Source of the DNA: Bugula neritina
Lineage: Eukaryota > Animalia > Bryozoa
Direction of reading: 5' to 3'
Assembly: GCA_964035545.1 (NCBI GenBank)
Contig: OZ037769.1
Location: 13,918,633 to 13,982,632, forward strand
DNA: 64,000 nucleotides
The notes beneath the pieces were generated by a model that ran no database searches, was not told the origin of the DNA, and saw nothing but the letters and a program-made list of their open reading frames with translations. Of this stretch, positions 3,110-64,000 are shown piece by piece (position 1 is the first letter of the stretch; every line of letters starts with the position of its first letter). Both the position numbers and the translations under genes were made by a program.

Positions 3110-3369
3110 CTGTAGGTAATATGATATAACTGATCAATTTTTAGCTCTGCACATGTAAATACTGTAAATCACAAAACATCATTATTTGCAACTTTATTGA
3201 GAAAAATTTATAAAGTGAGTTTAAGGAATAAGAAATTCTATTCTGTAGGTACATCAATGAAACAGGAAGCCAATTTTGCACCTCAAATTCGTAAAATAAA
3301 TATATGCTCTGAAAAAAAACTTTCCACCAATCATAAACAAAAATATACTTATTTGAGAAGAGAAATTAT

Positions 3370-7651: not shown

Positions 7652-12545
<4,894 letters not shown>

Positions 12546-18200: not shown

Positions 18201-21200
18201 CAAACATTCGTAGTTAGGAAAGCAAAGCCAAAATCTGATATATTAACACATAATAATTCTAGCAATGAAGTGAAAGTGCCCTTACTTACTTATCCACTCT
18301 ACAACTGCATTGTGTACATTATTTATAGTATCTGGTTAGATTTTCTTTTAAGTTTGTATAGTCTGTATAATATACCTGTTTGGTTTGTATTCTCTGTTTC
18401 TACAGACTGTATAATATGTAGATTGTATAATCTATAGACTGTATAATCTATAGTGTATAGTCTATAGATTGTATAATCTATAGAATTTATAATCTATAAA
18501 CTGTATAATCTATAGACTGTATAATCTATAGACCGTATAATCTATAGACTGTATAATCTATAGACTGTATAATCTGTAGACTGTATGATCTATAGTGTAT
18601 AACCTATAGACTGTATAATCTGTAGACTGCATAATATATAGACAACATATAGCTGATATACTATCTCTACCTGCAGGAGCTCTGGTGTACGCAGAGCTGG
18701 GAGCTTCTATATCTCAGTCCGGGGGAGAGTGGATTTACCTGCACCTGGCCTTCTCCCCTCTCCACCGCGTGCTTGGGCCTATACCTGCATACCTCTACTC
18801 CTGGACTAACGTGGTCGTTATGAAACCATCTAGTGTGGCCATCATTTGTCTGACCTTCTCTCAGTACATCATGACTCCCTTCTTTGATGCCTGCGGGCCA
18901 CCTGAAATAGTGCTCAAACTACTCACAGTTACCACTATCAGTATGTACTCGCAGTTAGTACTATTTGTATGTACTCATAGCACTATTAGTATGTATACTC
19001 ACAGCTAGTACTATCAGTATGTACTCACCGTTAGTACTATAATAATTATGTACTCACAGAGTCACAGTTACCACTATCAGTGTGTACTCACAGTTACTAC
19101 TATTAGTATAGACTCAGTAATTATTACAAGTATGTATTCACAGTTACGACTATAGGTATGCACTCGATCTACTAACAGTTTCGCCATATATATCTATGAC
19201 ATAATTTAACATTGTGAATGCCCTTCTCATCGTATCACTGATATTCTACCAATAAGATAATAGTATTCTAACGTTATATTACAGGGGAGACAACTTTTCT
19301 TACAATTGAATTATGTTGTGTGACATGATTTCGTCTTTTAGTGTTGTTGGCAGCCATCAACATCTACAGTCCGAAGGCAGGAAATAGAGTGCAGATTCTC
19401 TTCTTCCTGGTGAAGGTCGCAGCCCTTCTCGCTATCATTGTGGGCGGAATTTATCGCATGGCCTTAGGTGAGTAACCTTATTTAAAGTTGGTTATGGAGT
19501 AACATGTTGGGCCCAACATGGGTAACAATGTTTTTCCAGTGTGCTCTGAGTTTAGCATGGAAGGTAATCTGGGGGTTGCCTGTGGATAGATAACAGAGTG
19601 ATTTTAGGGGTAGCCAGAAGTTTGGTAATGGGGTAATTCAGTGGTTTTCTGAGGTAGGGTGTAACAGTACACTACACACTACACAGTCTCTGTAACCTGC
19701 AGTTGAATATTTTGCTAATCTCTTCAAAGTCCACACAACTCCTAATTACACTTGTTGGCTGCTAATATATTGTGCAGATAACAGTTACAGGTTTTCCTGC
19801 ACAGCCTCCACTTTTATTGACATGTGTGATTACTTTTATCAGGCAGGAGTTTATCTATTTAATGCTTGTCCAGCAGCTTTTTTGCCAGAATTTTGGAGTT
19901 ATCCACTCAACTTCTTTTTCTGAAAAAATTCCGAAATAGGCTTCAATATTCCAAAAGTTTAAAAGCCCGTAAAATTATTTTGATTAAATAGCTACAATGA
20001 ATTGATCTACCAGGGCAAGTATTTTTAAATGAATTTAGTCTGCATGTAATCTATTATTTTTAGGTGACACTAAACACGTTAGTTCAGGTTTTCAAGGGAC
20101 GGTCTCGTCTCCTGCCAGAATAGCTAAGGCTTTTTACTCAGGATTGTGGGCTTATGATGGTTGGAATAATCTTAACTATGTCACTGAGGAGATTAAAAAC
20201 CCAAAGAGGTTTGTCAGTTGCTAATAGCAACCAGTGTAACTATTGCCAATTGCCAAGACAGAACATTTTAAAAGCTGCTCTGGAAATGTTTTCTTTATTG
20301 TTAAATTCGAAAATAATTTTGTTACCTTGTTAGGAAGAATAAAATGGTGACCACATTAGTTTCTATTCTTTTGGCCTTATATAGCAATAATGCTTAGTTT
20401 GTGGAACTATTTAATTGCAATTTTAACTCAAACCTAAGAATAAAGTCAAGTGTGAGCTATTAAATATGTCAGGGTAATTAGATTAAAAATGCCAGTGATA
20501 AAGTTTATATTTAAATTGAGATAAAATGAACACTACTTGCATCGGCTGTAAAAAAATGAAACATAGCATAGTTATTTATATATTTTGAATTTTTTCTGAA
20601 GTTCTTTTGTAGACGGTGGTTACAGTTGTATTAGAAATTGTATTTTTTCTTCAGGAACATACCTCTGGCCATCATCATATCCATTCCCTTAGTCACTGTA
20701 ATCTACATCATCACAAACCTGGCTTATTTCTCTGTGCTGTCTCCATCAGCCCTCCTGGCCTCCGACGCTGTTGCTGTTGTGAGTTTACCTTTCTTACCTA
20801 TTGTATTGCAAGTTGTACTGCAGGCTGCATTGTGAGTCAGACTACAGGTTGTACTGTGAGTCGTACTATAGATTGTACTGTGAGTCTTACTATAGGTTGT
20901 ACTGTGGTGAGTCATACTACAGCTTTTATTGTGTGTCATAAAGTGAATTGTACTCTGAGTCATATTGATAACATTTATAACATGTCATATGTTGGATGCA
21001 GATATCCCCATATACTGCACACAGCATACTGAATGGGCAGATAACTTCCTATTATAATTATTTTTCTGAGCTGAATTGAATTATTGCTTTTCTATACTAT
21101 TTTTTAAATTCTGCTCTTGTTTCAAAAATAACCAGAGATGTATGCTAAAATGAGTGTAGATAATATTATATCTGTCTATTGTTGATATTTCTTTCAGTAA

Positions 21201-24200
21201 TTACTCTTGTAGCCTACTAGCACTTTTTTAGATTTTGCCATGCAGAAAAAATAACTAATGTGGTGCTACTAAAACAGTAAAACTGTTTTTTTTTAACACT
21301 AAGAACATAATTGGTGATCATTGTAATATTAATTATTTTAAATCAAATCATCAACTAATATGTTTTAAAAGATTTATTTTCTTGCTAAACTACACATATA
21401 CAGTTTAATAAACAAGCTAGAGTGTTTTTAGGACTGGGCTTTACTTGTACTTCCTTCTGCTGCCGTCGTCATAACAGTCTGTGTAGCTTTCTCTACATTT
21501 GGTGCTGCCAATGGAACTCTTCTCGCTGGTTCCAGGTTGGTAGTTGAGATGATCAGTTGAATATTTTGTAGTTTCTACCTGCTGCTTTTATTATAACTGG
21601 GTTTTTGACTTTAGACTTACAGTATAATATAAAAAACTCATGTTTATAGTCGTCATTACTGTGAGAAACTCCTGATGGAAGGGGTTTTTGTTAAAGCTAA
21701 GGACTTATTCATATGTGACATTGGAGTAATTATGACTGGATGCTCTTCCTAACATCACCAATGACCTTTGTCAGTTCGAACCCATGACTTCACGCTCACT
21801 AAGCAAATGCTCTAACCCCTAGACCACGGCTGCTCCCATTACAGTATATTATAACCTGTTGATAATTATAATATATAGCATGTTTTAACATGCATTATTT
21901 CCTCATCTATATAATCAATAATTATGTGGTAAAACAACTAATATTGGGTAAATAGCAAGTATTTTAATACCAGCATACACTGTGGTCACCTAAATGTTAT
22001 ATATTTATTTGCTACTTCTACAAAAGAAGATATTTTTTCAATTTTGTGCTAGGCACAAGACAACTTTAAATTACAACAATTATAAATTGAGTCGTGTAGT
22101 ATGATTGTTTAAAATTATTGTAATGTACTATTCTTACCAGCGGATTTCTACCTTAGGTTAGTGTACGCTGCTGCCAGGGGCGGCCATCTTGTTTCGCTGC
22201 TCTCCATGATTGACATCAACCACAATAGTCCTTCCTCTTCAGTCGTGCTAACGGTATGTCATTAACTCATATGAAGGTTTGTCACGAGTTGCAAACTCTA
22301 AAAATTTTTATTCGCTCAGTTTCGTTTTTATAAAAAAATTAGTCTAATATAGTAAGAGCTGTATTTAGATATTTTCAAAGTTACGTTATGTTTTACATGT
22401 TTGAAATAATTAATATAGTTTGTTTTTCTCACTGTACATAATTTCGTTTTATCAATAAAACTGCTTCATTTTTTTCCTGTATACATGAAAATCAGGCTCA
22501 GCTGCTTTTATCAAAATAACAGGTTTTTATTGAGAACTTTTTATGCAAAACTATTTTCTGAAATGCGAATAAAGTATAGTCTGAGTTAGTTTTCATTGCT
22601 GTCTGTTTCAGGCTACTATTGCCATCATCATGGTCATCCCAGGAGACATTTTCACTCTCATTGATTTCTTCAGCTTCTCAGCTTGGATATTCTATGGCCT
22701 CACAATGGCTTCTCTTCTCATTCTCAGGTGGAGACAGCCTGACCTTCCGCGACCCTTCAGAGTAGGTCTTTTATACAACTTAGTTTTTAAATCTTATACG
22801 TTTTTAAAGACCTAAAGGCTCACATGTCAGTTGATATGATCAAAACATATTGAGGTTTCATGAAACATCAACTAAATAGCTCTGTAAACAAAACCAAAAG
22901 TTGTGTGCCTAAATATTAAAGTTTATTTCTTTTCTCAACTAATGTTCTTCTCTTTGTATAGAAATAGGAAGGTAGAATGAGTTAAATTTTACTGTGATAG
23001 AGGTAACATTGCTAAATTTCTTTCTGAAAAACATAAATGGATGAACTTATTGAATTGAACTGTGCATATATCTTGTGCACCTGTGAGCATATTTTTATAC
23101 ATGTATATTAGTATATATTAGGTTAGCATACACGTTATACATGTTATGCAATTAAAACAATTTGCTAAATTCATTTTGTAAAATAAATTGATAACCATTC
23201 TAGCATGCCTAAAAACCCATTTATTTTTAGGTAATAATAAAATAATATAATAAGTGTTGAATGCTTAGTATGCTATATATGTATATCCTTGTCTGTGCAC
23301 AATATAATGTATATATTTGTAGTGTCCTATAATAATCCCCATCATAGTGTTGCTGTGCTCCATCTACCTGGTCGTAGCTCCCATCATAGACTCACCTGAC
23401 ATCCTCTATCTGATTGCTACTCTCTTTATGCTGGCTGGACTCATTTTCTACTTCCCTCTTGTTGCTCTCAACAAACATATCAAATCCTTTGGTGAGTGAT
23501 TTATATTATTATATTGTTATTATACTATTAGCATATATGCTATGCCTATTAGCATATATGTTATACCTATTAGCATATATGTTATGCCTATTAGCATATA
23601 TGTTATACCTATTACCATATATGGTATACCTATTAACATATATGTTATACCTATTAGCATATGTACTATGCCTATTAGCATATATGTTATACCTATTACC
23701 ATATATGTTATACCTATTAACATATATGTTATACCTATTAGCATATGTACTATGCCTATTAGCATATATGTTATACCTATTAGCATATTTGTCATACCTA
23801 TTAGCATTATAATTCACAGGTAAATGGTAAAACCAAAAATACTCTTTGTAAGCAATTGGAGTTTTACTTCTCTCTCGGCTGCTCTCTCTCAATAAAAACA
23901 AGCTATAATAAGCCTCCACGCAGACATATTTGTGAATACTGGTAAAATTTATCGTCGAAATTTCAAATATGACTAATAGAAGTTAAAGCTATTAGGCTAC
24001 TCACTCTAAGCTGTTATTTTATTGAATCAGTTACTAAAACTTCACTTCCCAAAAAGCTCCACTGTAGGTAATCAATAGTACTATAAGCTTTAGCTTTTTT
24101 GCCAATTTCAAAAGTGTAGCTCTTTCACTCAGACTATTTTACGCCAGCTTTGGAAATAGCATGCATAAAGTTAGTAAAATTACAACAGGATAGAATTGAC

Positions 24201-33219: not shown

Positions 33220-36200
33220 ATGGAAAGTTGCATCATTTCAAATTTTATTCCAAAGGAAGGTGTGAAAGAAAAGGGGATTACTCCCAAATACGAAAATATT
33301 GTTATATGTAGGGTAAGTAAAAACTAAGGAGTATTCACTACTAATAATGGGCGTGAAATAAGTGCCATTTCAATACAGATTTTTAGGTTGTCGCATTTTT
33401 TTTCTATTTTTCATTCAACCTCCACTATATATTATAATGTGTTTTGTAACCCAAACAGGGTAGAGAAGGGCAAGGAATTCAAACACAAGATAAATCTCTG
33501 ACCGAGTCGTCACCTGAGAGTTGTCTTTCCACTCACAACTCTGGTCGCAGAAAACTCGCCTCTAGCAGGTAAGCTATAAATTCGCAAGGCGATTGCCAGT
33601 GATGACATTAAACTGCAACAAGTTTAGCTAGCAGCACAGAGCAACATCTGACAAATATTAAACACTAAATCTTTAGACCCGCAACAAGTTTTGTTTGTTT
33701 TTTAAATAAATATTATTTCCACAAAACAGCAACTATAGTAGCATATTATTTTTCTGTTTTCATGTTTTATCAGGCGAAGGCTGTGGTTGGCCCGCAGACG
33801 GTCACGATCTATTGACTCAGCAGACATGCTTTGTGATTACTCTGCAAGAAAAATGTCCTCCGAAATGTTCAGACTATCAAAAATCATGGATGATTCTGCA
33901 GGAGAAAATGAAGACATCGATGAGGTTAAAAAGGAAAGAAATTACGTCCTTGTTCCAGCAATCAGAGGGTAATTCACTAAGCTATTATTATTTGGATACT
34001 CAAACTTAGCCTAGGTCTCTAGTTATTAGTAGGGTGGTTTAACGCAAGTTATGTTGGTGGCAAATACCTGGACATCAGACTATCTTATATGTTTAGTTTA
34101 AGACATAAATTTTCATGCCTACAGGCCTAAAAGCAGCAGCTTAATAGACGATCATGCTGTGTTAGTTTCAAACGTGAACTGTCATGGTAGGCAAAACTCT
34201 CAATTAATAATTTAGTTTCAAGGATACCAAAAGATGAAGGGTGGGAGATCTACCGTGCTGTGATTAGCGTAGTTACGCAGGTTCACCAAACAGTGGCTAA
34301 AGTTCTAGTCATGGTAAATTTGTAAGTCTAAGAATCACATTGCAAGAAATAACTCTAATATATTGTGAAATTCCATCTCTGTGGTCACTGGTTATAGTAC
34401 ACTTAAGGATTTTCATTTATATAGATTTATGTCAAAGATTCAAATATTCATCTTTGTTTGCCAGCTTTTAAGATAAAAAACAGATCATGATTTCTTCTTT
34501 TTTGCAAATATCTAAAAAGATAATCTATAGGAAATCCACTGCAAACACATTCAGCCATGCTCAAAGTGATAGACTTATACTGAGGTTTAGGTACTTCAGT
34601 AACTATAAAAGTCGTGTAGAATGCAAAGAACTATATAACCCGTGTGTAATAGCTGTGTAAACTGCCTAACTTAAGCCATTATACATAGTATAGAATGTTA
34701 TTATAATTATCTTACTTACTAGGTTTTGCATTTTCCCAGACTTATAAATATATTGGTTTTAAGGTATAACAACACCTACTGTTATTTAAACATAATAAAT
34801 ATAATGATGTTAGTAACTAATTCATGCAAGTAGCAACCTTTTTTATAGTAACTTTATACTGTTGGCAGAGCCTTAGCTAAACTGACATATTCTAATTTAT
34901 CATCTTGTTTAATGAAGCCGAACAAAATATTTTTTAAATACACAATCCAGTGCTTTAAAAACACACAACTACAGATTCAAATATGTCGATACTTGAACTG
35001 CTTATAGCATATAGACTTCTTGTATTGTGAGAAGATTGTTGTTCTCGAATTTTTGGTTGAAAGACAATGAGAAGTTTTTTTTAGCCTTTAGCAGTTCTTT
35101 TTCTATTTTTTAAAACGCAGGCCAAGGAGTTTATTTAATTGTCAAAACAAAAGCCAAGACACTAACCAGGCTCACACTTTATCACATTACTTACTCATTT
35201 CAAAAAACATTTAACTTTCTGTGCATATTTAGTGATAACTAGACACAGCATGTTATGTTTTAACTGATAGTAAAGTACTACTGTAAGTTTACAGGAATTA
35301 CAGGAAATCCTTTTAGATAGTCAAGCTGATTACAGATGTACACACACAGTGTTGTAACATGATATGGCGTCAATCATGAGTTCGCATTCTTGACATTTAT
35401 TTACCACACTTTATCTGAACTGTATTTTTCTCAACAAGTTTTCTATTTTTTATAAAAACATTTTTTTATGTTTTAATGATTACAGTAGCTAACTTTTTAA
35501 ACAAGAAATGATTTTTTTTACTTAGGTATTGCATTATTAAATTTCTAGGTGTAATAACTGAGAAATTTCCAAAAGTGTTAGTTCTTGTTTTTGGGCATGG
35601 GTTGAAATTTTCAAGAGGATGTACTTTTTTATGAAAGGTTTATCACCTATAGCAGTGCACATACTTTGACAAAATTTCTCCATTACAGTACATTCTTTGG
35701 TTATTATTTGATCATTAGGAGATGATACTGTCTTAGCACAATGGCAGACAGATTTCCTAAAAAAAAACCACAATAATTACCCAGTGGAATTAGTCAATTG
35801 CTTCTGACTCACAATGACTAATTGACACCAAAGTATGACTAATTTTGACATGCTCAGAAGGTACCCTTTGCTAATGCTACAAACTGTTCAAATATATAAT
35901 TAATAGCTGGTGTTTAAACTGTCTAGACTCAATATATTGGCTATTATATCAATAAAAGGAGCCCACACAAGTTTATAGTCACTATCCCTGTAAGAAACCC
36001 AGGTGAAAAAGACTTTTAAATCAGGCTAAAGGCTTATTCATATGTGGCAAAGGAGCATTTATGACTAATGCTCTTCCCAATATCACCCATGGCCTTTACT
36101 GGGGCTCCAATTGATGACGTGGGGTTTACTAGACTAGCGCTCAGCGCTCTAACCCCTAAACCAACCTCTATCACTTGACTCAATAGCTAGTTATTAATAG

Positions 36201-40086: not shown

Positions 40087-40290
40087 GTTTATATAGTCAC
40101 TATCCCTGTGAGAAACCCCTGATAGAAAGGGCTTTTTAAAGTGGGCTAAGGACTTATTTAAATGAGGCACAGGAGTAATTATGACTGGATGCTCTTCCTA
40201 TAACATCACAAATCGTTTTTTCTGTGGTTCGAATCCATGACTTTGTGTTCACTAAGCCAACGCTCTAACCCCTAGACCATGGCTGCTCCC
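40087..40290 (-). mobile_element. tRNA-derived SINE, family 1, just downstream of the SH2 gene stop
   Basis: Full-length copy; 12-bp direct repeat TTGTGTATATAA at 40072-40083 and 40291-40302. Confidence 0.85.
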
Positions 40291-44993: not shown

Positions 44994-45120
44994 GGGAGCA
45001 GCTGTGATCTAGGGGTTGGAGCGTTTGCCTAGTAAACACGAAGTCAGGGGTTCAAGCCCTGACAAAGGTCATTGATAAATATAAGTCTTTAGCCCGAATC
45101 AGAGATGGCGACTATAAACT
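44994..45120 (+). mobile_element. tRNA-derived SINE, family 1, internally deleted
   Basis: GGGAGCAGCTGTGATCTAGGGGTTGGAGCG head and GACTATAAAC tail, with the middle missing. Confidence 0.7.
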
Positions 45121-47119: not shown

Positions 47120-47950
47120 TATAAGTATTGTAGTAATAATTTGCTTTACTTATAAAAAACCATAAAACTTTAGAGCTCAAACTGTTCCCATCTGGCAATA
47201 ACTATGAACACAATGAACACAATGGACAAAGCTCTTCAGCAATTAAAAAAAATAGAGATTCAACTCAGATTACTATATATTTTAATCAGATAGTCACACG
47301 GGATAAAATATGTTGATTATGTTCTGCAGAAATATTAATTTACCAGTAGGCCTGAAATATTTGTAAGCTGAAACCTAAGATGTATACAGTTGGTGTCTAG
47401 GAGCTGGCGTTTGGCTGTCAGAATAATAAACATTGTCTTTTATACCAGACGTGGGGAGGATTTGCTGCTTTACCTAAATTAAATAATAAGCTAAGAACTT
47501 TGCAAGTATGATAATATAGCTACAACTATAGTTTGAGATGTATTATATGTTAAACAGTTAGTGATGAGCTAGTGAAAAAGAAAAATTTTCAATTAACGAC
47601 ATTGGTAGCTGTAACCATAAAGTATATTTTGATGACCACAGTCAAGTAGGAAAAAATACATTACTAGTATAGTAAGTTGTTGAATATTTCATTTTTTCTG
47701 TACTTTTAGCCTCCCAAATGCATATTCATTATAATTATATTCGCATGCAGGTTTATCTATGATGTGATGTTGATTTGTGTATACACTGCATTATTCAATG
47801 TCACATGATAATTTCGATAGTATAGAATCATTGCTATACAAAACACATGTAGGTACTCTGTACTAAAACAATGAAACTGTGTGTTTTGCATATAACCTAT
47901 TAAATTCTAATGACAAGTATTTTAACTTCTTACATAACTATAACGAAAGG

Positions 47951-48812
47951 TATAGAATGACACTCTTTGCTATGACTCTTGCTTTAGAGTGACACTCTAG
48001 CTTATACAGCCTGACTAGGAATAGGGAGGGTTTTAGACGTGATCAGAGTTTATTTGAGTCACCAATGTTGATCAAATACTGACCAAACACTGACCAAACA
48101 CTGACCGTAAAAACTAAAATAATAATGATACAACATAAGGCATAAGCAAACAAAATGTACGTAATATAATAAGTATGTATGTAAAAGCACTAGCAATGTA
48201 TATCATAAATTGTAGATAGCAGCATGAAATAATAATTCAACATAGCATGCAACTACAGCCCATATTATTAAAAACTTTATAACATAAAAATGTAATAACT
48301 ATATATAATTGTAAATAGATGTTCATTACCTCTTTTCTCTCTCTCCTAGTCTACTGTTATGTTAATGCTGTGGCTTTGCACAGTCTTTCAAATAATGCTA
48401 CTCTTTAGTAGTCTTACATAAATTTGATGCTGTCCAAACTGACAGCATGACTCTAACAATATTGCAACTAGTAAAAATGGTTTTGTCTTATATACTAATC
48501 CATTTGATAAACATTATTGTGTTGTAAGAGGTATGATTTTACAATTTACTATTTTGGGGTAGGATCTTACTGTTTCAAGAAGTGGGCTGAAGTAAACAAG
48601 CATCGTGTGACATCACAGCTGATGCAAGCATAGCTGCTGACTATGAATCATTCTACATGCGTAGCTACTGTTTTGGGGTAGTAATTAAAGAAGCATTAGG
48701 TAGACTACTAGCAGCTAGTGGTTAGGCTAATTTGAGGTTGATGACATTGTGATTGTGTGTGATTGTACTACAAGTTATAATTTCTGTAAACATCCTATTT
48801 CGTAACATTACA
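47951..48812 (-). repeat. 3' LTR (862 bp, contains a 216-bp GT-AG intron at 48114-48329)
   Basis: Direct repeat of 52596-53233. Minus-strand TATATAA at 48488-48494 and AATAAA at 48049-48054. Confidence 0.93.
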
Positions 48813-48934
48813 CTCCCCCCTTTAATTTCTCTCTATTCACTTAGAGGGAATTAACAATTATATTATTATGCATTTAAAATACTAAGCTAAAATACTAATA
48901 TAGCTATGCATGCAAAGGTTATGGGGTAAATAGG

Positions 48935-49210
48935 TAAATTAATTTGTGGATAGGCCTATCTAAGTATGTGGGTGGAGCTAGTCTCACATCTTTACTGTTC
49001 AACTCTGTAGTTGCTAGTTGTACTTTTACCTTACAAATTAAGTCATCTCAGTTTTATGTGTTTCCATCTTTACTTACACAATTGTCTTTACTTAGCCTGT
49101 AATATTCATCTAAAAATGACTCTTTTTGTACCCACTGCATTATAAGATGTTTAGCATGTGTCAAGTCATTAATTGTGAGTCTGGGAGTTATGCTACCTTT
49201 ATGCTTTACC
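48935..49210 (-). pseudogene. residual pol fragments (RNaseH-integrase linker and integrase C-terminal tail)
   Basis: LTINDLTHAKHLIMQWVQKESFLDEY resembles the BEL linker. DDLICKVKVQLA...YLDRPIHKLIYL resembles the BEL pol C-terminus. The RT core, RNase H and integrase core are missing. Confidence 0.75.
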
Positions 49211-51943
49211 AATCTTTTTCTTTTTGGGGTGATACACGCCAAAGTGGGGGATGTACCACTGATGGTTGCTTGCCTCACAATTTGTAGGTACCAATTCTGC
49301 ATCGCCATTGTTTATTATGTCTGTCATGAATGCCACGTAATCTGTTCCGTATTTCTTGTCTTTAAGCATTTTAGTTTTGAGGATATCAAGTCTGTGCACA
49401 GCTAATTGTCTATTGTCTGGTAATTGTGGCTTAGCATTTTTAGACGGCAGTGGTATGCTGTAATAATTGTCTTCTCTTTGTTTAATATTGTTGTGCCTGT
49501 TTTCTAAAAACTTGGCATCTTCTTGTGACATTTTATGAGTAGCCATGTATTTAGTGTCCGCATAATCTTGCTGTAGGACATTCAAGATATCTGAACTCAA
49601 ATTCTGCTCATGAGCCATAGCCCTATTGCATGTGGGAAATGAGTTTGTTTTATGCTTACCACTATTGCCTACAATACACCATCCTAGAGGTGTTCTCAGA
49701 GCAAAGGGATCATTGATTGCAGGGCCTATTTTAGTTTCAAGTGGCACTAAAGCTCTGGAGTTGTCATACCCTATAAGCATTCCTATCTCTATATCTAAAC
49801 CTTGTGGTATTTCACTTGCAATGCATTTAAGGTGTGGCCATCTATTGGCAATTTCTGGTGTGGGTATGTGCTGCTTGTTAATTGGAATGCTGTCCCTACT
49901 GTAAGTCTTTCCTACTTGTATCTGCTCATGCATGTTCAGTCCTCTAATGGTCAAGTTATTGTACACCTTACACTTCATTTCCAAGTTGTCAGCTGTCATT
50001 GTTGTTAGTTTAAGAGAAACTGGTTTGCTTGTAGCTGTTTGTAGCTTACTAACAACTTGGTTAGTTACAAATGTGGTATCTGACATGCTATCTAAGAGTG
50101 CATAAGTTAGCACTTCCTCATTAGGGTTATCTACAGTTGCTAGGTATATAGGCACAACCATTGAGCACAAGCCATTTGTTTTAGTCACTGTATTGTTGCT
50201 GTTAGCTGTTACTTGCTCTGGGTTGTTGCTACTTGCTACTTCATTTACCTGCACTGTTTCTACTTTGGTATTACTGTTGTTAGCTTGTGTAGCTGGCTGA
50301 TTGCTTCTATGTGTTACAGTAGGATGCCTGTTTTGGCATATTTTACAAGTAGCTCTATTTCTGCATTCTTTTGTCATGTGACCTATTCTCAAGCAACCAA
50401 AGCATAATCTTTTACTAGTAATGAACTGTTGTTTTTGATCAACTGGTATGCTAGCCAGTTTTCTACACTCATGTGTGCTATGATTACTGTAATTGCAGTA
50501 GAGGCATAGTTTAGCTTTGTGGTTTTCTGTACTTTTAACACCAGGAGAATGCTCTTCTATGCTAGTAGCAAAGCTAATGCCCTTATTGTTGTGCTTTTGA
50601 GGCTTATGTGAGTCTATGACCCTTGAACCTAGCAAAGATGAAGTGATTGGATCGTTTAGGATTTCTGCTTCTGTTTGCACAAACTTTACAAACTGACTAA
50701 AACTGGGGTAACTCCTGTGATTTTTCCTATGTGTGGTTACCTCCCGCTTCCATCTGTTTATCATGTTATCTGGCAGCTTGGACATGAGCTCAAGATTCTT
50801 TTCGCAATCATTTAAAATTTCCAACTCTTTAATATCTTTTGCTGCTATTTCACAATGTGTGAGGAAGTCAGAAAATGATTGTATCTGCTTATGTTCATGT
50901 GGTTTCATTTTGGGCCAAGCATTAATTTTCTTTCGAAATTCATTAGCAACTGTGAATTCTGACCCAAATCTTTCTTTCAAAATTATTCTGGCCTTTTGGT
51001 ATGCTGCTAGTGTATGTAAACTGCATAGGCCACTAATTGCTTCTCTAGCAGGTCCATCAACATGCTGTTTCAAGACATGCATTTTACCATCATCACCTAT
51101 CATTTTATCCTTGATGTAACTCTCTATGGCATATTCCCAATCTATAAAGTCTAAGGGATTTCCCCTAAATATTGGTGGCTTTGGCACATTGTTGGCTTGT
51201 ATTGCTTTTGTTAAGCATGTGGCCAGGTATTCATTACTGCATGTAGAATGCTGTGATTCATTGTTTTGCATGCTGCCTATTTGCTGTGGTTGGTTGCTTT
51301 GCAAAACTTCTACTGGCCTACTAAAAATAACTTCACTATTGCTTTCCTGATTCACTATTGGTTGGCAATTATCTAAATACTCTGCTAGCTCATCTCTAAC
51401 ATCTACATCATGTTCCTCTATTATTTCCTGCCTTATTCTCAGTTGTTTCTGTTTTTCTAACAGCTTACTTTTACTTAGTTCCAACTGGACATTGGCTAAC
51501 TGCCTTTCTAGCTCAGCCTGTCTTTGCATGGCTTCCATTTCAATTTCTAATTGTGCAACTTGCAATTTTGTCTTGGCTGAGATGAATGAGCTTGCTTTTG
51601 ATGTGTGTTTACTGCTAGCATGTACTGAATGGCTTTCGCCCTTACATTGTTCATGTATACTGTTAATTTGCTGTGTTAAGTCCTCAAGGTGAGGATGACT
51701 TGGAGCTAATGACTTTAGAATTGCTAAGTCAGCATCTGCATCTAACATAATTCGTTGTATGTCATCCCAAAATTCATTATCATGATTGTCTGTTGCTGCA
51801 TGCCTACTTCTAAACCTTTTAATTGCACTTGTGACAGATTTAAACCTTTTTTCTACCTCTAATTGTTTTCCCTTTGTAGATAGGGTTTTGACTCGGCTGC
51901 TAATCCTAATGCTATTACTACATGTGGATGTGTCATCATTCAT
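49199..51943 (-). CDS. BEL/Pao Gag-protease polyprotein truncated at the start of RT (914 aa)
   Basis: Coiled coil, then PIFRGNPLDFIDW capsid-like region, then three Zn knuckles (CLYCNYSNHSTHEC, CFGCLRIGHMTKEC, CKICQNRHPTVTH), aspartic protease YALLDSMSDTTFV, PFALRTPLGW, and RT start WYIPHFGVYHPKK followed by an abrupt stop. Confidence 0.92.
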   Translation of the reverse strand: MNDDTSTCSNSIRISSRVKTLSTKGKQLEVEKRFKSVTSAIKRFRSRHAATDNHDNEFWDDIQRIMLDADADLAILKSLAPSHPHLEDLTQQINSIHEQCKGESHSVHASSKHTSKASSFISAKTKLQVAQLEIEMEAMQRQAELERQLANVQLELSKSKLLEKQKQLRIRQEIIEEHDVDVRDELAEYLDNCQPIVNQESNSEVIFSRPVEVLQSNQPQQIGSMQNNESQHSTCSNEYLATCLTKAIQANNVPKPPIFRGNPLDFIDWEYAIESYIKDKMIGDDGKMHVLKQHVDGPAREAISGLCSLHTLAAYQKARIILKERFGSEFTVANEFRKKINAWPKMKPHEHKQIQSFSDFLTHCEIAAKDIKELEILNDCEKNLELMSKLPDNMINRWKREVTTHRKNHRSYPSFSQFVKFVQTEAEILNDPITSSLLGSRVIDSHKPQKHNNKGISFATSIEEHSPGVKSTENHKAKLCLYCNYSNHSTHECRKLASIPVDQKQQFITSKRLCFGCLRIGHMTKECRNRATCKICQNRHPTVTHRSNQPATQANNSNTKVETVQVNEVASSNNPEQVTANSNNTVTKTNGLCSMVVPIYLATVDNPNEEVLTYALLDSMSDTTFVTNQVVSKLQTATSKPVSLKLTTMTADNLEMKCKVYNNLTIRGLNMHEQIQVGKTYSRDSIPINKQHIPTPEIANRWPHLKCIASEIPQGLDIEIGMLIGYDNSRALVPLETKIGPAINDPFALRTPLGWCIVGNSGKHKTNSFPTCNRAMAHEQNLSSDILNVLQQDYADTKYMATHKMSQEDAKFLENRHNNIKQREDNYYSIPLPSKNAKPQLPDNRQLAVHRLDILKTKMLKDKKYGTDYVAFMTDIINNGDAELVPTNCEASNHQWYIPHFGVYHPKKKKIGKA

Positions 51944-52464
51944 TGTTGCTGTGTTAGTAATAGAGACAGTTAGTGATAAGCATGCATTTACTTACTACAG
52001 CTATTTTATAACCTAAATTCAGTAGGAAAACTAGTTTGGACTAGTTTGTCAAGATTTATCACTAGCCAACAGCTAATGCAAACAAACAGCTGATGCCAGC
52101 ACAGGGATTGTACCCAACTGCCCAATCAGAAACAGGGAGATCCTAATTAATTTTATGGGGCTTTGACACAATGTTTATCAAATGGAGTTTCTATAATTAC
52201 AATACTTCCAAAAAATAAATCTGCATGCAAGCCTAATTATTCTAATAACTTTCCATTCAACTATTTCCTTTATAATTATGTCACTTATATGTGAAGGTGA
52301 GGGTTATATGGTAATCTCTCACCAATCTGCTGATTCCAGGTCACCTTTGTATGTAGTTGAGAGTAGTTGAGAATAATCCTGATAAATGTTAGTAATGTTT
52401 ATATAGTTGAGGTGGGTAGAAGTGAGGTTCTCTTTGTGGTCGTCTTATGTTTGTCGGCTTCTTT

Positions 52465-52595
52465 TGTTGGACTTGAGATGGAGCTGTTACTCCCGGACTT
52501 GAGAAAGAGTTTTTACTCTCGGACTTGAGAAAGAGTTTTTACTCCCGGACTTTGAGAAAGAGTTTTTACTCCTGGACTTGAGAAAGAGTTTTTAC
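52465..52595 (-). repeat. 26-bp tandem repeat at the primer-binding-site position
   Basis: Four copies at 52491-52595 (minus-strand unit GTAAAAACTCTTTCTCAAGTCCRGGA) plus one degenerate copy, abutting the 5' LTR. Confidence 0.9.
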
Positions 52596-53233
52596 TATAG
52601 AATGACACTCTTTGCTATGACTCTTGCTTTAGAGTGACACTCTAGCTTATACAGCCTGACTAGGAATAGGGAGGGTTTTAGACGTGATCAGAGTTTATTT
52701 GAGTCACCAAATACTGACCAAATGCTGACCAAACACTGACCGTAAAAACTCTTTTCTCTCTCTCTCCTAGTCTACTGTTATGTTAATGCTGTGGCTTTGC
52801 ACAGTCTTTCAAATAATGCTACTCTTTAGTAGTCTTACATAAATTTGATGCTGTCCAAACTGACAGCATGACTCTAACAATATTGCAACTAGTAAAAATG
52901 GTTTTGTCTTATATACTAATCCATTTGATAAACATTATTGTGTTGTAAGAGGTATGATTTTACAATTTACTATTTTGGGGTAGGATCTTACTGTTTCAAG
53001 AAGTGGGCTGAAGTAAACAAGCATCGTGTGACATCACAGCTGATGCAAGCATAGCTGCTGACTATGAATCATTCTACATGCGTAGCTACTGTTTTGGGGT
53101 AGTAATTAAAGAAGCATTAGGTAGACTACTAGCAGCTAGTGGTTAGGCTAATTTGAGGTTGATGACATTGTGATTGTGTGTGATTGTACTACAAGTTATA
53201 ATTTCTGTAAACATCCTATTTCGTAACAATACA
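52596..53233 (-). repeat. 5' LTR (638 bp, intron-less form)
   Basis: By eye it matches the 3' LTR except for the 216-bp block, a 10-bp and a 2-bp repeat-unit indel and a few substitutions. Confidence 0.93.
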
Positions 53234-54618
53234 AAAGGGATAGTATAGGATGTTCATAAAATTAGTTAGGAATTGTTTGATTTGATCACAAAAAATCAAT
53301 ACGAGACTCAGTTTAAAACTATGCAGCATTTTACCTAGGCTATAGTCATTTTATTTTATGACTGGAAGCTTGAATGCCTCTTAAAAAGCTTTTCATATAT
53401 ACTTTCTTATAGTAAGCTTCATTATAAAATTCAGTATGCCGCGTGTTAGTTATATTTTTGGCTGATATTTTTGTAAGGAATACAGTTCTAAGATTAATAT
53501 CTAAAACTTTGAGTTTGATAACAACCTGAACAATAATTGCTACCAAGTTTATCTGATCATCAAATTTCAGAAAAGTTTATTTTTGTTGCTTAGTGAGCAA
53601 TACTCTTGGTTACATAACACTACAATTCCGTTAACTCAGTGAAATAAAAGCACCTGTCTACACACATTTGTTGTAATTCTTATTCACCCCAGCAAGGGAC
53701 TAAAATTTGTCAGCTTGTTTTGAAGGCAGTATTTTACTTTAAGTAAAGGTTTGAGTTACATAAAATTGAGTAGATATAATATAAATATCACACCCGATGT
53801 ACCAATGAGCACCATAATCATAATATCCAGTAAACAACCAAATCCCCTTTCAGGTCTGTGTGACAAAATGTGTTTATCAATTATCGCAATAGTAGAAAAA
53901 CATTTTATTCACATCAGAAGGTGACCAGAACTTGTTGACTTGCTCTGAAAGTCGTGCCTCAGTTCACGTATGAGCAATTGCATTAAAGCTTACATAAACT
54001 TACATAAGAGCTATGAGTAGATGTGATTGATAACACACAGCGCATAACAATGAACAATCATTGTAATATTATCCAATAAACAGCAAAATCCGGTTGAGGC
54101 ACGTGTCTCCAAATAAGTTTATCAGTTATTACAATAGTAGGGAAAGTTATCACGATATGAATTCCGACTGGAAAATCACTTTTGCCTGGGGGCGTGGTGT
54201 AATTTGAGTAGCCAATGGGATATTAGCATACAGTATTTATATATTATTTTGCTTTATGTTTTGTATATTGTTGCTTCAATAATATACAGCTAAACAAGCT
54301 GCTCTGTAAACCATGAAAGTTTATTATGTCGAAGACAAATACTAATTTAAATTTGAAAACAGTAGTTTCGCTTATCAAATAATTATTATCAGGTTTCGTC
54401 TACTGTCAGCTACTTTAAGACAAGCAAAGGAGAGCAACAGGTTAGCTAAAATAATGTTAGACATTAATTTTGTATGACTTGTTTGTGTGTTTTCTAATTG
54501 ATATTAGTTAAAAATATTGCAGCATATTTCAATGCATATAATATAAACATCATCTTGTGCTTTGCTTTAGTTGCCTGCAGCATTGAATCTCGCTTTCACA
54601 CAAATAAATTCAATGGGG

Positions 54619-54984: not shown

Positions 54985-55169
54985 TTGATAGTTGTCATCC
55001 CTGTGAGAAAAACACCAATGGAAGGGGCATTTTCAGATATATAGGGCACAGGAGCGATTATGATTGGATGCTCTTCCCAACATCACCGATAGCCTTTACT
55101 GGGTTCGAACCCATGACTTTATGCTTACTAGGCAAACGCTCCAACCCCTAGACCACCACGGCTACTCCC
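54985..55169 (-). mobile_element. tRNA-derived SINE, family 1
   Basis: ATCCCTGTGAGAAA...GGATGCTCTTCCCAACATCAC...GGGTTCGAACCCATGAC...CCCCTAGACCAC. Confidence 0.8.
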
Positions 55170-55611: not shown

Positions 55612-56073
55612 ATGAAGTTTATGGGATATGCCTGCGATATTCTGACTATACTCTCCATAGTGGGTTGCATCTCAGCTAAAACACTGCAGACTAAGCTGGG
55701 AGAAATCGAAGGGCTTAGTGAAAACCTCAATGGAACTACGGTGTACAGTTATTTAGGTGAGTACTTCTATATAATACACCTTTCCTATCAAGGTAGCTGT
55801 ATACAGCATATCTGTACAACTAAAACCTCACTTTATTTATTGTATTAAATTTATTTACATATTTTTGTAAAAGGTTGATTAAAAAAGTAAGTTTTAAAAC
55901 TAGTGTTAAATTTAGGCAGCAGTAGAAAAGTTGGGCACTTCTCATGCTTACAGGGTTTTTTGAATTTAGGTCATAAACAAATTTAATTGGGGGTCGGTTC
56001 AAGGGCTAGGATATTTGTCAGTCACTAGAAAATATAAATAGTGTAGTTGAGCCTCGATAATATGAATATTTTA

Positions 56074-56114
<41 letters not shown>

Positions 56115-59100
56115 TATGTATATATATAATCTTCTAAGTTTTTTAGCACCTTTTTCATCTTGCGTGGTTGGCTGCCCTTTAAAAAAAAATTTAAAATTGT
56201 CTATTATTTTGTTGAAGGAATTCCTTTTGCCAAACCACCTACCGGGGAGAGAAGATTTAATAAGCCTGAGGCCTTCGGATCCTTTGAAGGAGGAAGTTTA
56301 AAGGCTACAGCTCCAGGCTTCGCATGTCCACAGATGATAGCAAATGTTTATAAGCTAGGAGATGAAGATTGTCTGTTTTTGAATATTTACACTCCTAACC
56401 CAACTGGAAATCTAGTGAGTGTCTATGTAAATATTTTATTGAAAAATGTTAGCAACGGTTGTCAGTAAAAAATCTAAAATGATAAAAACTTTATATAGTA
56501 TCAGCAATAATGAAAAAATTTCAGAACAATAATTGAAAATTAATAATTTTATTTCTGTAATTTATTTAAATTTAATTACCCTTAAACTGCACTATCTTTT
56601 GAGTTCTTTAGCACCTCTTTCACCTTGTGCAGTTGTTTGCTTTTTAGGAAAACATTTTAAATGTATTTTTTTCTTCTTTTCAGGCGGTTATGATTTTCAT
56701 CCATGGAGGAGGGTTTTATCAAGGCGCATCACATTTTTACGATCCAAGCGTGATGGTGGCGCAAGGAGAGGTTGTTGTTGTTACATTTAATTATAGAATA
56801 GGAGCTCTTGGCTTTATGTCAACCGGAGACGACAAACTTCCCGGAAACTATGGACTCTGGGATCAGAAGTTGGCCATAGAATGGGTAAAGGAGAACATAG
56901 AAGATTATGGTGGTGACACCAATAATATCACCCTCTTCGGCCAATCATCTGGGGCTATGTCAGCCATGTTTCAAATGCTGTCGCCAGCTAATAATAACTC
57001 TCTTTTTCAAAGAGCGCTACTTCAGAGTGGCTCTGCGTTGCTCTCCGCAAATATTGTCCAAGACCCTAAGCAGGTACACCAACAAGTAATTTTTTCCTTA
57101 GGCTGCGAAATCGATTCAGAGTTGAAAAAATGTCTTCAGAGTAAAAGTATGGAAGAGATTCAAGTTGCGTCGCAATTCAATTTTATACCCATGAACAGCC
57201 TTGTTGTAGTTGACAATGATTTTTTTTATCATGGCGTTTTAGCGATTCTTGATGCATTTACGCAGCATGGCAATTCTTCGCATACGAGAGATTTGGTTGG
57301 TAATTTTGGGACGTATGATTTGTTTAGCGGATGGAATGATCAAGAAGGAATATTTATACTTGGTGTTTTGCCATTAATTGATTCAAGCTTCAATAATGTT
57401 AGTGAAGGATTTTCCGAAGAAATGCTTTTTAAGGCTTTGCAATATTTTCCTTTTACAAATCAAGGATTTGTTTCCACATCCAAATCTGCCTCTTTCATAA
57501 ATGACCTGTTAATGCAGTACTATACCAACAAACAAGATAACCTAACTACAGCAAGTAAAGACCGACTAAGAAGATTCATTGAATTCATAGGTACTCTACC
57601 AGTCTTAAACATTTTAAATCATTGTATTGTTATTTTTGTTGGTCACCCATTGAGCTAAAGTCTTTGAATTTTTGAATATCTGAAAAAAGCTATCAGAGCT
57701 TTCTAATCTAAATTTTTAGTTAAAAAAATACAATTTTTTTATTCATTTATTTGTGGCATGCAGGTGAAGAACAATCTTTACTAGTCATTTTTTACGCTCT
57801 TGATTATGCATAACTTCTTAAAGATAATCATAATTCATAGTTGTATAGTAATTACGTGTTGAAGCAACATTATTTTTAATTGGCCAGATAGTGTAGCCAA
57901 TGAAAGCTCACGTTAAATATTTATAAGATTTTCAGTGCTATTAATGCTACTAACTGTATATTTTATTTTGTCCTAAAAATTTAGGTGTGTTTTTAGGTGA
58001 TGAGTTTTTTGTTATGCCTACAATTCAGCACTTAAAGTTACACAGCGCCATATCTGATAAGAACACGTTTGCATATGAATTCAAGCAACCTATAAGCAGA
58101 CCTGCTGACACTCTGGCATGGCTCAGAACTGGAGCAAATCACGCTGACGAAGGTTTATTCGTGTTTGGTTTCAGAAACAAAGGTAAACTCAAACAAAAAG
58201 CTGTCAACTGTTTAGTTCAGCTCGTTATTTAGAACGTGCTTTTCAACAGAGTCTGTAGCAAAAAGTAAAGAAACCTAGCTTTTGATAATTTTAGGATGTT
58301 TTTGTAAAACTTGCTAATTAACAACAATTTTTAATAGCTAAAAGGCCCAATTATATTTATTAAATTAGGCTAACATTTCTGCTGTTGAAATTTTAGTAAC
58401 TATAACTTTGTTAATGACACTAAAAACTTGAAAATAATATTATAGCATTACAACTTTTAACTTTTTAATCAAAAACTGCTCCAAATACTTTGTTTGACTA
58501 ATCATGTTTTTTTTTAAATTGACTGAAATTTGATGTATTTTTAAATTTTTTATATATAATCACCAGTTGCTAATTTTTTAATAATTTGATGTTATTTCAG
58601 CAAAAAATTTATTGGATATTTGGTGATACAGTAAATTCATAGCATCATGTAAATTATTTAATCAGAGTAGAAATGCCTACAATTAATAATCTTTCTGTAG
58701 TACCTGGGTTTTCCTATACCTATAATGAGGAAGAAAAAGAACTTTCCGATAAGATGATTCTTCACTGGACAAACTTTGCTAAGACAGGGTGAGCTATCTT
58801 CAATATTTGATTAGTAATCAATAAATTAATTAACTGCAGAAGATTGAAATTTACAGCATTTTATCCAAGCAGTTTAACAATTCAAGTCAAATATAATGAT
58901 AGTAATAATGGTGTCTATATAGCACATGGTATGGCTGCAGTTACAAGTGATCCTGTAGTGACATGTAGTGACATGTGGTATGGTTGTGCTTGAAAGTGGC
59001 AGAGTTAATTTGCTAATATTTGATGTGTATGTAGAGAAAATAGTGTGGTATTTATGGTAACATGTAGTTTGATCATGGCAACAAAACTTAATGTTATTTA

Positions 59101-61087: not shown

Positions 61088-64000
61088 CTACTTGTTAATT
61101 TTCTTTCTGAAATGGATGATGACGCCAATTAGGATGATACAAATGACAGCAAGTAGTACTGATAACACAAGGGTTGTAGTGATCGCAACGTCAGCTTCCT
61201 GTGCTGTCAGCTGCAGCAGTCCATTCAAATACTCATCTGAAACAGAAAGATAATTGTTTGCTAATAAAAGATATAAAAACTTATTACTTAATTTGAGTTG
61301 TCTTCTCTTGGACTTTTCTCTCATGAAAAGTTTTTTGACCATATTCATTATTCAAATATTATTTAGTGTAAATTGAACTTAAATATTATCTATGGATATA
61401 CTGATAAAAAAATTGAGAGTTGCATTGCATGCATTATAATCTTATTAGCCTCAAAGATTGCAACAAGATGCCATTTAATATGTAAGAAATTGGCTACAAG
61501 AAATATTGATAGTTGTCTTCTCTTGAATTTCTACCTTATGAGAATTTTTTAAGCATGTTAATACTTCCAATATTAAAAAGACAATAATATTAAATATTAC
61601 ATATTACCAATAAATATAATATTAAATATAACAAGTTGATATTTAATATTTCACAAGCTAAAGAATTTCAAGGAATGATCAAAGTTAGCATTTGCAGTTT
61701 AAATGAAATTAATGAAAGCTAAAAGTAGTGCAGCAACAAGAGGTGGGAATTGTCTTACTTTTGGAATTGCCCTCTGTGCTCATAGAAATATCAACTGGAG
61801 TTGTTTCCTCTAAGTCAACTTTGTTCTCAACCTCTTCACTATTCATTGCTGCAGAGTTAATAGCCAAAAGAATTTGCGCCTGACTGCTGTATGGGTAAGA
61901 CAACTTCTCAAATTCCCCAGTTTTCAGTCTGGTGTAGGCCTGAGTGCTGGGATATTCAAACTCTGTGTAGTCAGTGTTTGATGGATCTCTAAAATGGAAG
62001 GTTATAATTTAAACAATACTAGTTATTTATAAAACAAGTAAAAGCAAAGAACTTATAATATATAGAAAGTTTGTAGAGTGAAATAATGAGAAAATTTATA
62101 GCTGTAGATGTCTTACCCAGTTTTAGCAAAACTTGTCCATTGTTGTATCATTCGCTGAGAAAGCTGTTTTTCTACTTCAGTAGCATTGTAATATTCAGCT
62201 CCCGCGACTACAAATATAGATAAGAATTATTAAATATAAAATTTTGCATTCAGCTTTAAATATTTCAGAAAATGATATATGCAGTTTCAAAAAACATTAT
62301 TTTTTCAACTTCAAAAGCCAATATTTACACTCACGCAAGTTTATAGTGGCTTTCCCTGTGAGAAACCCCTGATAGAAAGGGCTTTTGTTAAAGCGGGCTA
62401 AGGACTTATTTAGATGAAGCACAGGAGCAATTATGACTGAATGCTCTTCCTAACATCACTGATGGCCTTTGTCGGGGTTTGAACCCATGACCTTGTGTTT
62501 ACTAAGCAAACGCTTTAACCCCTACAGCAAGGCTGCTTCTCAAAAACAAATATTTAGGCTACAGTTAAATAAACCTCTTCTGTAAAGTTAAAATGAATTG
62601 AATAACATATCCCAACGCACGTGTTTCCTGGAACCCAAACACAAATTTAGCCTCTTCTGTGTGCGAGGCTCCAGTTTTCAGCCAGGTGGGGTACAAGCTG
62701 AACTGCCCGTTGCCTCTGACATTGTGACTAAACTCATAGGCAAAGGTGCTTTTATTTGAGAGGGCGCTGTGCAACTGCAGGTGATGGACTGTGGGAAGAA
62801 TAAACTTTACTTCTCCTGTAAAAGAAGTAAAAAGACAGATTCTTATATACGTTGTGCATGTTGCTACCAGTAGATTTCTTATGATAAAAGTTAAAATATT
62901 GTATTCTATTTTGTGTTTTTACTGTGTTGCAAGTAATGGTAATATAAGAGAAAACATAAAAAATATATTTGTAGAGCTTATAAAAGAAATTATATGCTTA
63001 TATTGTTTGCATAAGTTCTACAAATATCATTCTGTCATTTATGTACTGCCAAGTTTATTAGTTTTTGAATTTTTTATAGAAATAAAGCCAAGATTTTAGT
63101 GTTAATCTATATTACTAAATTTTTTTTCAGCAGCAAAGCTCTTTGATAGCAATAAAAACATGTGAAATTGAATTTATATTTCTATAAGAATGAGCTTTTA
63201 CCAAATATTTCATATATAACATAATTTGATTCACTAATTTGTCGGAATTACTTCATACTGTAAAAAATTCATAAAGTAAACTAGACAATAAAAGCAGCGT
63301 TTTAGTTATACTTCAAAAAATATTTTAAGCCCATATTAACTCACCAAATATTTTAGTGAAAATTTCCAATCTCTTTTCTTCAATCGTTCTATGCTTGCTG
63401 TTGAGCTTTTCATCGTCATTTAAATAAAATTCAGGTAAAATGTTTGCTATTAGTTCAACCAGTTCTTTATTGTTGCCTATTTTGCTAAAGTCTTGAAATA
63501 CAGGCACTTTCAACGCTTCACGTAGCGCCTTCGCAGAAAGACCCGTCTGAATGTTAGAAAAATTAACTTCCTCCACTAAGCGGAGTAAAACTAATAAACC
63601 AAATAGACCTTCTTGGTCCGTCCAACCACTGAACAAGTCAAAACTGCCGAAGTTTGCCAACATTGATTTCGTGGTCTCGGACAAGCCAGTACGAGCAAAG
63701 CTATCCATGATTTCATAGCCGTCATAGTGCAAAAAATCTTTATCAACCACTGGGTAAAATATTAAATTGAATCTTGGACTAGTCGCAGCCATAATTTCAT
63801 CACTAGTTTTACTTGATAAACACTCTTGAGGCTGTGCTGTTGAGGAGCAGTTTAGACGCTGAAGAACTGATTGGGAGAAGAAAGCTGGAGCTTGACTGAT
63901 TGAGGCAGCGGCAAGGGCTGACCCGCTTTGAGCTATGACTCGCTGAAATAGTGTGTTGTTGTTTAATGGAGACAGCATTTGAAATGTTGCTGATATCGAG
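61088..64000 (-). CDS. second membrane-anchored carboxylesterase paralog (5' part outside the window)
   Basis: Exons >64000-63345, 62815-62621, 62207-62117, 61988-61759 and 61236-61088 have the same intron positions and phases as the + copy. Motifs FQMLSP.NN.LFQR.I.QSGSAL, FDLFSGW.DQEG, GASHTEE, WTSFAKTGDP, and a TM helix followed by RKKINK. Confidence 0.9.
62339..62540 (-). mobile_element. tRNA-derived SINE, family 1
   Basis: Near full-length homolog of 40087-40290 within a carboxylesterase intron. Confidence 0.8.

Follow-up and report, generated by a model that had tools for sequence, protein, structure and literature searches.

The question raised by this locus is how reverse transcription is primed in a retrotransposon whose 5′ LTR is not followed by the TGG of a tRNA-type primer-binding site. 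The element lies on the minus strand of a 64,000-nt stretch of the 216-Mb genome of Bugula neritina (GCA_964035545.1, contig OZ037769.1:13,918,633-13,982,632), referred to here as the window; window coordinates were checked by script and are read on the minus (sense) strand. As an earlier note on this DNA had observed, the expected TGG is missing, and positions 52595–52580, directly after the 5′ LTR, read GTAAAAACTCTTTCTC. The note went on to propose that the element builds its own primer by splicing an intron out of its LTR. Here, we find support for that interpretation in covarying relatives, in the lack of a complement encoded by the host, and in genuine loss of the intron from LTR copies; that the junction primes is what we infer from these. 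Judging from sequence, it is likely that the family depends on an element-encoded, splice-assembled self-primer working like that of Tf1, through putative steps of RNA cleavage and priming.

The insertion is a complete LTR retrotransposon, with both LTRs, an interior at 48813–52595, a 5-bp target duplication and a polypurine tract (Table 1). Full-length copies of the same family, here called family A, are present in the same genome; they measure 8.0–8.1 kb and encode a single 1893-aa protein with the Pfam domains DUF1759, Peptidase_A17, integrase zinc domain and DUF5641. The Pao-type peptidase (Peptidase_A17) is recognized in full-length copy L032 with E=6e-47, and a domain search of the 914-aa ORF of the window copy finds none. 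Because this ORF carries DUF1759 only, in contrast to the full-length relatives, the window copy is a non-autonomous deletion derivative of family A. Eight insertions have 5-bp target duplications, all with one identical polypurine tract. By its Pol and gag domains, LTR pair, target duplication and polypurine tract, family A is a BEL/Pao (Belpaoviridae) family, and it resembles canonical members in its DUF1759 gag, peptidase A17, DUF5641 integrase, LTRs of 0.4–1.1 kb, 5-bp duplication and G-rich polypurine tract. At least eight short non-autonomous copies (the window copy, L031 and L039–L044; about 5.2–5.5 kb) carry a gag-like ORF of 914–931 aa. They are mosaics of one another, which suggests trans-mobilization by the 8-kb elements together with frequent recombination.

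Table 1. Coordinates of element features in the window
Feature	Position	Strand	Remarks
5′ LTR, intron-less	52596..53233	(-)	638 bp; starts TGTATTG, ends TCTATA (TGT...ATA); from self-BLAST and alignment with the 3′ LTR
3′ LTR, intron-containing	47951..48812	(-)	862 bp
Target-site duplication CCTTT, upstream copy	53234..53238	(-)	
Target-site duplication CCTTT, downstream copy	47946..47950	(-)	
Polypurine tract AGAGAGAAATTAAAGGGGGGAG, G-rich	48813..48834	(-)	Adjoins the 3′ LTR; same in all copies
Gag-like ORF, 914 aa	49199..51943	(-)	DUF1759 is the sole domain; deleted, non-autonomous copy
TATATAA box	52909..52915	(-)	Upstream of exon 1; putative promoter element, from sequence only
Exon junction GAGAAAAGAG/TTTTTAC, proposed self-primer	52742..52758	(-)	Exon 1 ends at 52749, exon 2 starts at 52748; 3′ end is C 52742, followed by G
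11-nt tandem repeats, start of exon 2b	52706..52741	(-)	Site of greatest difference between 5′ and 3′ LTRs
AATAAA polyadenylation signal	52694..52699	(-)	In exon 2, after the junction and ahead of the LTR end
Candidate primer-binding site GTAAAAACTCTTTCTC	52580..52595	(-)	Adjoins the 5′ LTR end; complementary to 52742-52758
Tandem array, 4.9 units of 26 bp	52469..52595	(-)	From TRF; primer-binding motif opens each unit
LTR intron, 216 nt, GT..AG	48114..48329	(-)	GTAATG...polypyrimidine-TAG; in the window copy, only in the 3′ LTR

Other repeats are also present in the window. A tRNA-Thr(AGT)-like sequence at 55088–55164 (minus strand) lies within a dispersed repeat of 100–200 bp, similar stretches of which occur at 21636–21837, 35964–36097, 40087–40290, 44994–45074 and 62332–62537; this repeat probably represents a SINE family of tRNA origin. 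Long tandem or low-complexity arrays are found at 9463–9952, 18399–18643, 23504–23811 and 56057–56128, and those at 9.5 kb and 56.1 kb have a common repeat unit.

The 16 nt that follow the 5′ LTR have the reverse complement GAGAAAGAGTTTTTAC, and the exon junction pairs with them in just the way the note had described. Thirteen contiguous base pairs form, and 16 when a single A is bulged; the 3′ C of the junction lies opposite the first post-LTR base, 146 nt upstream of the LTR end; and the unspliced sequence offers 9 nt (AG plus TTTTTAC). To gauge chance, every third 30-mer of the element interior, on both strands, was treated as a mock site, and 0 of 4080 showed an anchored complement, contiguous or split by GT..AG, of at least 13 nt. 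Virtual spliced leaders, in which exon 1 was joined to exon 2, were used for the complement counts and for folding; the junction:site helix is part of the minimum-energy structure for two of six families.

The primer-binding site is at the same time the first unit of a tandem array of 26-bp units, a feature absent from the earlier note. Units number from one to five among otherwise near-identical family A copies. In copy L056, from a cichlid, two 23-nt units follow the 5′ LTR, and in L047 a gained 25-nt unit (819–843) matches the copy's own junction better than the older unit does (13 nt versus 11 nt). Repetition of the priming-site motif may have arisen incidentally, as the primer itself was copied in plus-strand synthesis. 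The tandem arrangement, the variable number of units and the better fit of the unit gained by L047 could also be taken to mean that the match is without function, the post-LTR units being stray retro-copies of the junction or the pairing a product of chance. This we find hardly credible: control sites almost never attain the observed lengths, the arrangement is kept from coral to fish with compensatory changes (see below), and units copied from the junction are the expected product of plus-strand copying of a self-primer.

If the junction is to matter, the LTR intron must in fact be spliced, and splicing of this intron is real. The 3′ LTR reads GAGAAAAGAG/GTAATG...TTTTAG/TTTTTAC (slashes mark exon boundaries), and the 216-bp GT-AG intron recognized in the earlier note, present in this LTR, is precisely missing from the 5′ LTR. 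About 35 family A LTRs are found in the genome, and the intron is present in all but three: the window 5′ LTR, the 5′ LTR of the short element L031 (target duplication ACTAT; G000:C4:9437425-9442622) and the solo LTR L002 (target duplication GTTGT). Intron-less LTRs were counted by a genome pattern search with short joined junction patterns of 23–25 nt. Two further families in this genome show the same kind of loss. In the L050 family, the copy L047 lacks the intron, precisely, in both LTRs, and more intron-less LTRs are present; the L051 family has 12 intron-less LTRs, including three elements in which both LTRs are intron-less. Precise loss of a GT..AG intron from DNA copies is the mark of reverse transcription of spliced RNA, here seen in three families.

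Four sequencing runs were available as contigs, and it is our guess that they derive from RNA. In these RNA-like contigs, coverage of the 5′ LTR begins near 52848, and exon 1, exon 2 and U5 are covered far more heavily than the interior. The contigs cover the intron as well. The spliced form appears among them as one 12-nt overhang, AAGAG/TTTTTAC, in one contig of run X6, with the RNA nature of the run again a guess. RNA-like contigs also run from the LTR end into the host element of L034, and loose ends are seen at 52595. L034 itself (G000:C4:11717000-11726700) is a solo LTR of an 87% relative, nested with a GAGGG duplication in both LTRs of another element. As a solo LTR it has no priming site, and it was discarded as a test case.

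If the primer is indeed made at the junction, relatives should show the same arrangement, with junction and site varying together. This comparison yields strong evidence and is central to the case for self-priming. A search with a Pol fragment of family A showed that the Bugula genome contains seven or more further intact BEL/Pao families, with reverse transcriptases 29–57% identical; one copy per family was taken, and its LTRs were located. In five further families, the junction left by the LTR intron is an exact complement of the family's own post-LTR site (Table 2), as expected from the note's proposal. Across the intron, the complement extends by 4–23 nt into exon 1. Sites vary among the families, in each case to fit that family's junction; this amounts to covariation and excludes one shared host primer. 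L047, the intron-less form of the L050 family, has a contiguous complement. L046 is an exception: this young and intact element has an intron and a similar junction, and its pairing is poor (2 + 7 nt with a 2-nt bulge).

Table 2. Junctions and post-LTR sites in BEL/Pao families of the Bugula genome. A slash marks the exon boundary; controls are mock sites that reach the observed match length
Family	Junction	Post-LTR site	Match (nt)	Intron (nt)	Controls
Family A	AAAGAG/TTTTTAC	GTAAAAACTCTTT	13	216	0/4080
L045	ATAAAG/TTTTTAC	GTAAAAACTTTAT	13	171	0/4204
L048	ACAAG/TTTTCAC	GTGAAAACTTGT	12	219	4/4572
L049	TAAAG/ATTTCAC	GTGAAATCTTTA	12	221	1/4374
L050	AAGAG/TTTCAC	GTGAAACTCTT	11	162	9/4576
L051	23 nt of exon 1 + GGTAC (unrelated sequence)		28	129	0/3838

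A host tRNA or tRNA fragment with a good fit to the site would speak against self-priming, as the earlier note had recognized. A pattern search of the genome with the 16-nt complement gave 24 exact matches, 23 of which are sites of the family itself; matches with one mismatch occur genome-wide only at the level of a reversed-pattern control. No host gene with a complement to the primer-binding site was found in the genome-wide pattern search, an Rfam search of the element gave no match, and neither a TGG nor anything tRNA-like lies next to the LTR. A tRNA-type site is missing from each of the 14 families and species that we looked at. The tRNA-Arg or tRNA-Gly site attributed to BEL/Pao elements is likewise not what is seen here: the post-LTR bases read GTAAAAAC..., and their complement contains a run of five T and is without CCA complementarity. 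A run of five T terminates Pol III transcripts. Sequence evidence of this kind makes a host RNA unlikely as the primer. L038, with two mismatches to the LTR end plus site, was rejected: it lies in unrelated DNA and matches by chance. A satellite whose period is about 525 bp (G000:C108:5287-6877 and 51781-53908) contains GAGAAAAAGTTTTTAC, one mismatch from the primer-like 16-mer, and is probably unrelated.

It could still be that the pairing is real and selected, and that it serves packaging or dimerization, translation control or plus-strand transfer while a host RNA primes. Pairing by itself is no proof of priming; the helix lies outside the minimum-energy fold in four of the six families; and L046 is young and intact in spite of its poor pairing. 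We regard this as unlikely nonetheless. The end of the LTR is by definition the point where minus-strand synthesis starts. Of the 14 families and species, 13 have a complement that begins at the first post-LTR base, the place that defines the 3′ end of the primer. Moreover, no tRNA-type site lies nearby and no host gene carries a complement, and since the post-LTR bases vary by family, one shared host primer cannot fit all of them. Self-priming from the junction thus continues to be the reading that we favor.

Proteins 45–54% identical to family A Pol are found in many animals. We examined eight such foreign elements, with LTR pairs 99.3–100% identical, from a bryozoan, a sea urchin, a hemichordate, a starfish, a cichlid, a snail, a coral and a cyprinid. 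All eight LTRs end in ...CA or ...TA and are followed by GT(A/G)A..., and all eight contain, 78–127 nt before the LTR end, a polypyrimidine tract, AG, and 6–7 nt that end in AC and are followed by G. These 6–7 nt are complementary to the element's own first post-LTR bases, with compensatory changes among the variants (TTTTTAC, TTTTCAC, ATCTTAC, ATCTCAC, CTCTTAC, TTTTAC and TTCTCAC). In each foreign element, 0.3–2% of control sites have an anchored complement as long as the observed 8–9 nt or longer. The sequence ...AC/G at the putative cut is kept in 14 of 14 families and species, and a single AATAAA or ATTAAA lies 17–70 nt after the start of exon 2 in all 12 elements checked, so that a usable repeat is left for strand transfer. 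In the coral (Oculina) copy, L058, two MITE-like insertions with terminal inverted repeats (1848–2506 and 2660–3769) break the 5′ LTR; these are not introns, and the 3′ LTR is contiguous.

A donor site chosen by a generic splice-site score alone coincides with the donor that extends the complement in 10 of 12 elements, plus those of the coral and the cyprinid. In seven of the eight foreign elements, the donor picked by score adds 1–2 nt beyond AG (binomial ~4e-4, with 1/4 per base assumed). As exon 1 adds only 1–2 nt outside the Bugula genome, the case for dependence on splicing is genuine yet weak there. These short extensions bear on a simpler scheme, namely ordinary Tf1-like self-priming by a transcript whose 5′ end starts at AG/TTTTTAC, with the intron and exon 1 irrelevant. 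In the eight foreign elements, the contiguous complement is just 8–9 nt and begins at AG, and the 78–127 nt that separate it from the LTR end, with a poly(A) signal near their start, correspond to the usual sizes of R and U5. Several observations make such a start highly unlikely, though: the reach of the complement into exon 1 in the Bugula families, the textbook acceptor (polypyrimidine tract plus AG), which precise intron loss in three families shows to be used, the RNA-like contigs that cover exon 1 (if RNA they are), and the extension of the match by score-picked donors in the foreign elements. Taken at the level of sequence, self-priming of the junction type is probably common to an ancient BEL/Pao lineage.

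How might such a primer work? Transcription would begin upstream of the LTR intron, with an exon 1 of about 95 nt. Splicing would then join ...AAAGAG to TTTTTAC..., creating the primer sequence, and the junction of the spliced leader would fold back onto the site adjoining the 5′ LTR, or that of a second spliced RNA would pair with it in trans. A cut in the RNA after ...AC, always before G, would free a 3′-OH opposite the first post-LTR base, in the manner of Tf1 RNase H. The resulting minus-strand strong-stop DNA would consist of U5 and exon 2b up to the cut, about 139–156 nt in family A. It would jump to the matching 30–90 nt of exon 2 that precede the poly(A) site at the 3′ end of the RNA, and synthesis would go on to copy exon 2a, the intron (unspliced at this 3′ end), exon 1 and the promoter region. 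The intron would thereby be regenerated in both LTRs of the new copy.

In this scheme everything upstream of the cut would act as U3, which can explain the persistence, in both LTRs of nearly all copies, of an intron that undergoes splicing at the 5′ end. A conventional primer copying spliced RNA from its 5′ end would quickly lead to loss of the intron from the family. Were the 3′ copy of the intron also spliced, both LTRs would become intron-less and the complement contiguous, as in L047 and several elements of the L051 family. The scheme requires that the intron be spliced at the 5′ end of the RNA yet retained at the 3′ end, and an RNA primer of about 100 nt would require a stop to its plus-strand copying. 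It also implies a short strong-stop DNA, about 92 nt in the L051 family; in family A, this DNA would stop opposite the G that follows ...TTTTTAC and would carry, at its 5′ end, RNA with the sequence ...AAAGAGUUUUUAC. Short tandem repeats lie directly after the putative cut site: the 11-mer GGTCAGTGTTT is present two to three times in the window LTRs (48069–48106 and 52706–52741), and the L050 LTR has, after its junction, five copies of the 9–10-mer GGTGTAAAAG. The copy number of these repeats differs between copies. Tandem copies of a putative R region have reportedly been described for Bombyx Pao.

At its broadest, this reading would apply to a large and ancient BEL/Pao lineage, extending from cnidarians to teleosts, that is independent of tRNA primers and licenses reverse transcription via the host spliceosome; we put the chance of this at about even. 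The evidence seems to us evenly balanced, too, on the proposition that in this lineage the primer sequence exists only in RNA from which the 5′ LTR intron has been removed, and we lean neither way on a third, that strong-stop DNA ends short of the junction and the intron is rebuilt from the unspliced 3′ end.

The copies that carry a mixed pair of LTRs give some indication of the RNA that was reverse transcribed. The window copy and L031 are independent insertions, both with their target duplications intact, and in each the intron is missing from the 5′ LTR and present in the 3′ LTR. In standard reverse transcription both LTRs are copied from one minus strand, so loss of the intron from the 5′ LTR only needs a second template; on this ground, standard reverse transcription alone was rejected as the source of the mixed pair. 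The 5′ LTRs of both insertions are chimeric. Their U3 and exon 1 are as in the partner 3′ LTR (the window 5′ LTR shares a private exon 1 variant with its own 3′ LTR), their exon 2 is foreign, and within 45 nt of exon 2 several events separate it from the partner LTR. The foreign tract of the window copy extends across the site array and for about 900 nt into the interior, where it and copy L044 are nearly identical. Since the tract reaches so far beyond the priming site, we discounted a switch of the plus strand to a second strong-stop DNA.

The simplest account of the chimeric copies is a template switch during minus-strand synthesis. The minus strand would have switched to the co-packaged RNA of another copy and run on to its spliced 5′ end; pairing with plus-strand strong-stop DNA would then have produced a heteroduplex 5′ LTR, resolved by replication. 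The same outcome would be expected if cDNA made from a spliced RNA had driven gene conversion of a resident copy. By either route, the sequences suggest that the RNA that was reverse transcribed had its 5′ copy of the intron spliced, and that the copy giving rise to the 3′ LTR was unspliced. Intron loss mediated by cDNA and copy-choice recombination can thus account for the three intron-less LTRs and for the mosaics. They are side products that show the state of the RNA, not the mechanism of priming.

Splicing of an LTR-derived leader by the host is also seen in retroviruses of the HTLV/BLV type, which have a splice donor in R; splicing yields subgenomic mRNAs, and the intron is not wholly within the LTR. 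The present elements differ in that both splice sites are inside the LTR and the junction matches the priming site. BHIKHARI, considered as a related case, was rejected: it is classed as ERV1, and the papers on it make no mention of LTR introns. We know of no earlier case in which a splice junction forms a primer of reverse transcription, and the full-text literature searched, which leaves out many subscription papers, contains no description of self-priming in BEL/Pao elements or of a primer made by splicing.

Self-priming itself has been established in the case of Tf1, and there are predictions of it for Tf1/sushi, Tcn1 and TAR/Houba elements; all of these use the first nucleotides of the transcript (PMC6317226). 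The elements described here are like Tf1 and Tf2 of S. pombe in that they lack a tRNA site and in that their own 5′ RNA is complementary to the site adjoining the 5′ LTR. The complement is about 11 nt in Tf1 and 10–28 nt in the present BEL/Pao elements. In both, an RNA cut is needed to provide the 3′-OH, demonstrated for Tf1 and putative for the elements described here. The Tf1 primer is the very 5′ end of the transcript, whereas the one proposed here would lie about 95–100 nt inside the transcript, across an exon junction. Furthermore, Tf1/sushi elements have a Pol of the Ty3/gypsy chromovirus type, while the Pfam domains of family A are those of BEL/Pao. Family A is therefore Tf1-like in its proposed mechanism, and is not a member of the Tf1 group. 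According to the ICTV, BEL/Pao elements are primed by host tRNA-Arg or tRNA-Gly (PMC8742986), unlike the 14 families and species considered here, and the main survey of BEL/Pao makes no mention of primer sites, tRNA or introns (PMC3118150). The tRNA-Arg/Gly site is best taken as one that describes BEL/Pao rather than defines it.

Finally, annotation pipelines that look for tRNA-complementary sites will fail on BEL/Pao elements of this kind. If the proposed mechanism is true, self-priming extends to a third superfamily of LTR retrotransposons, one given as tRNA-primed in reference texts. The persistence of an intron inside an LTR would also be explained, as the intron would effectively be located in U3. 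Lastly, such elements would be insensitive to defenses directed against tRNA-type primer sites (review: PMC7472051) and would escape silencing based on tRNA fragments.
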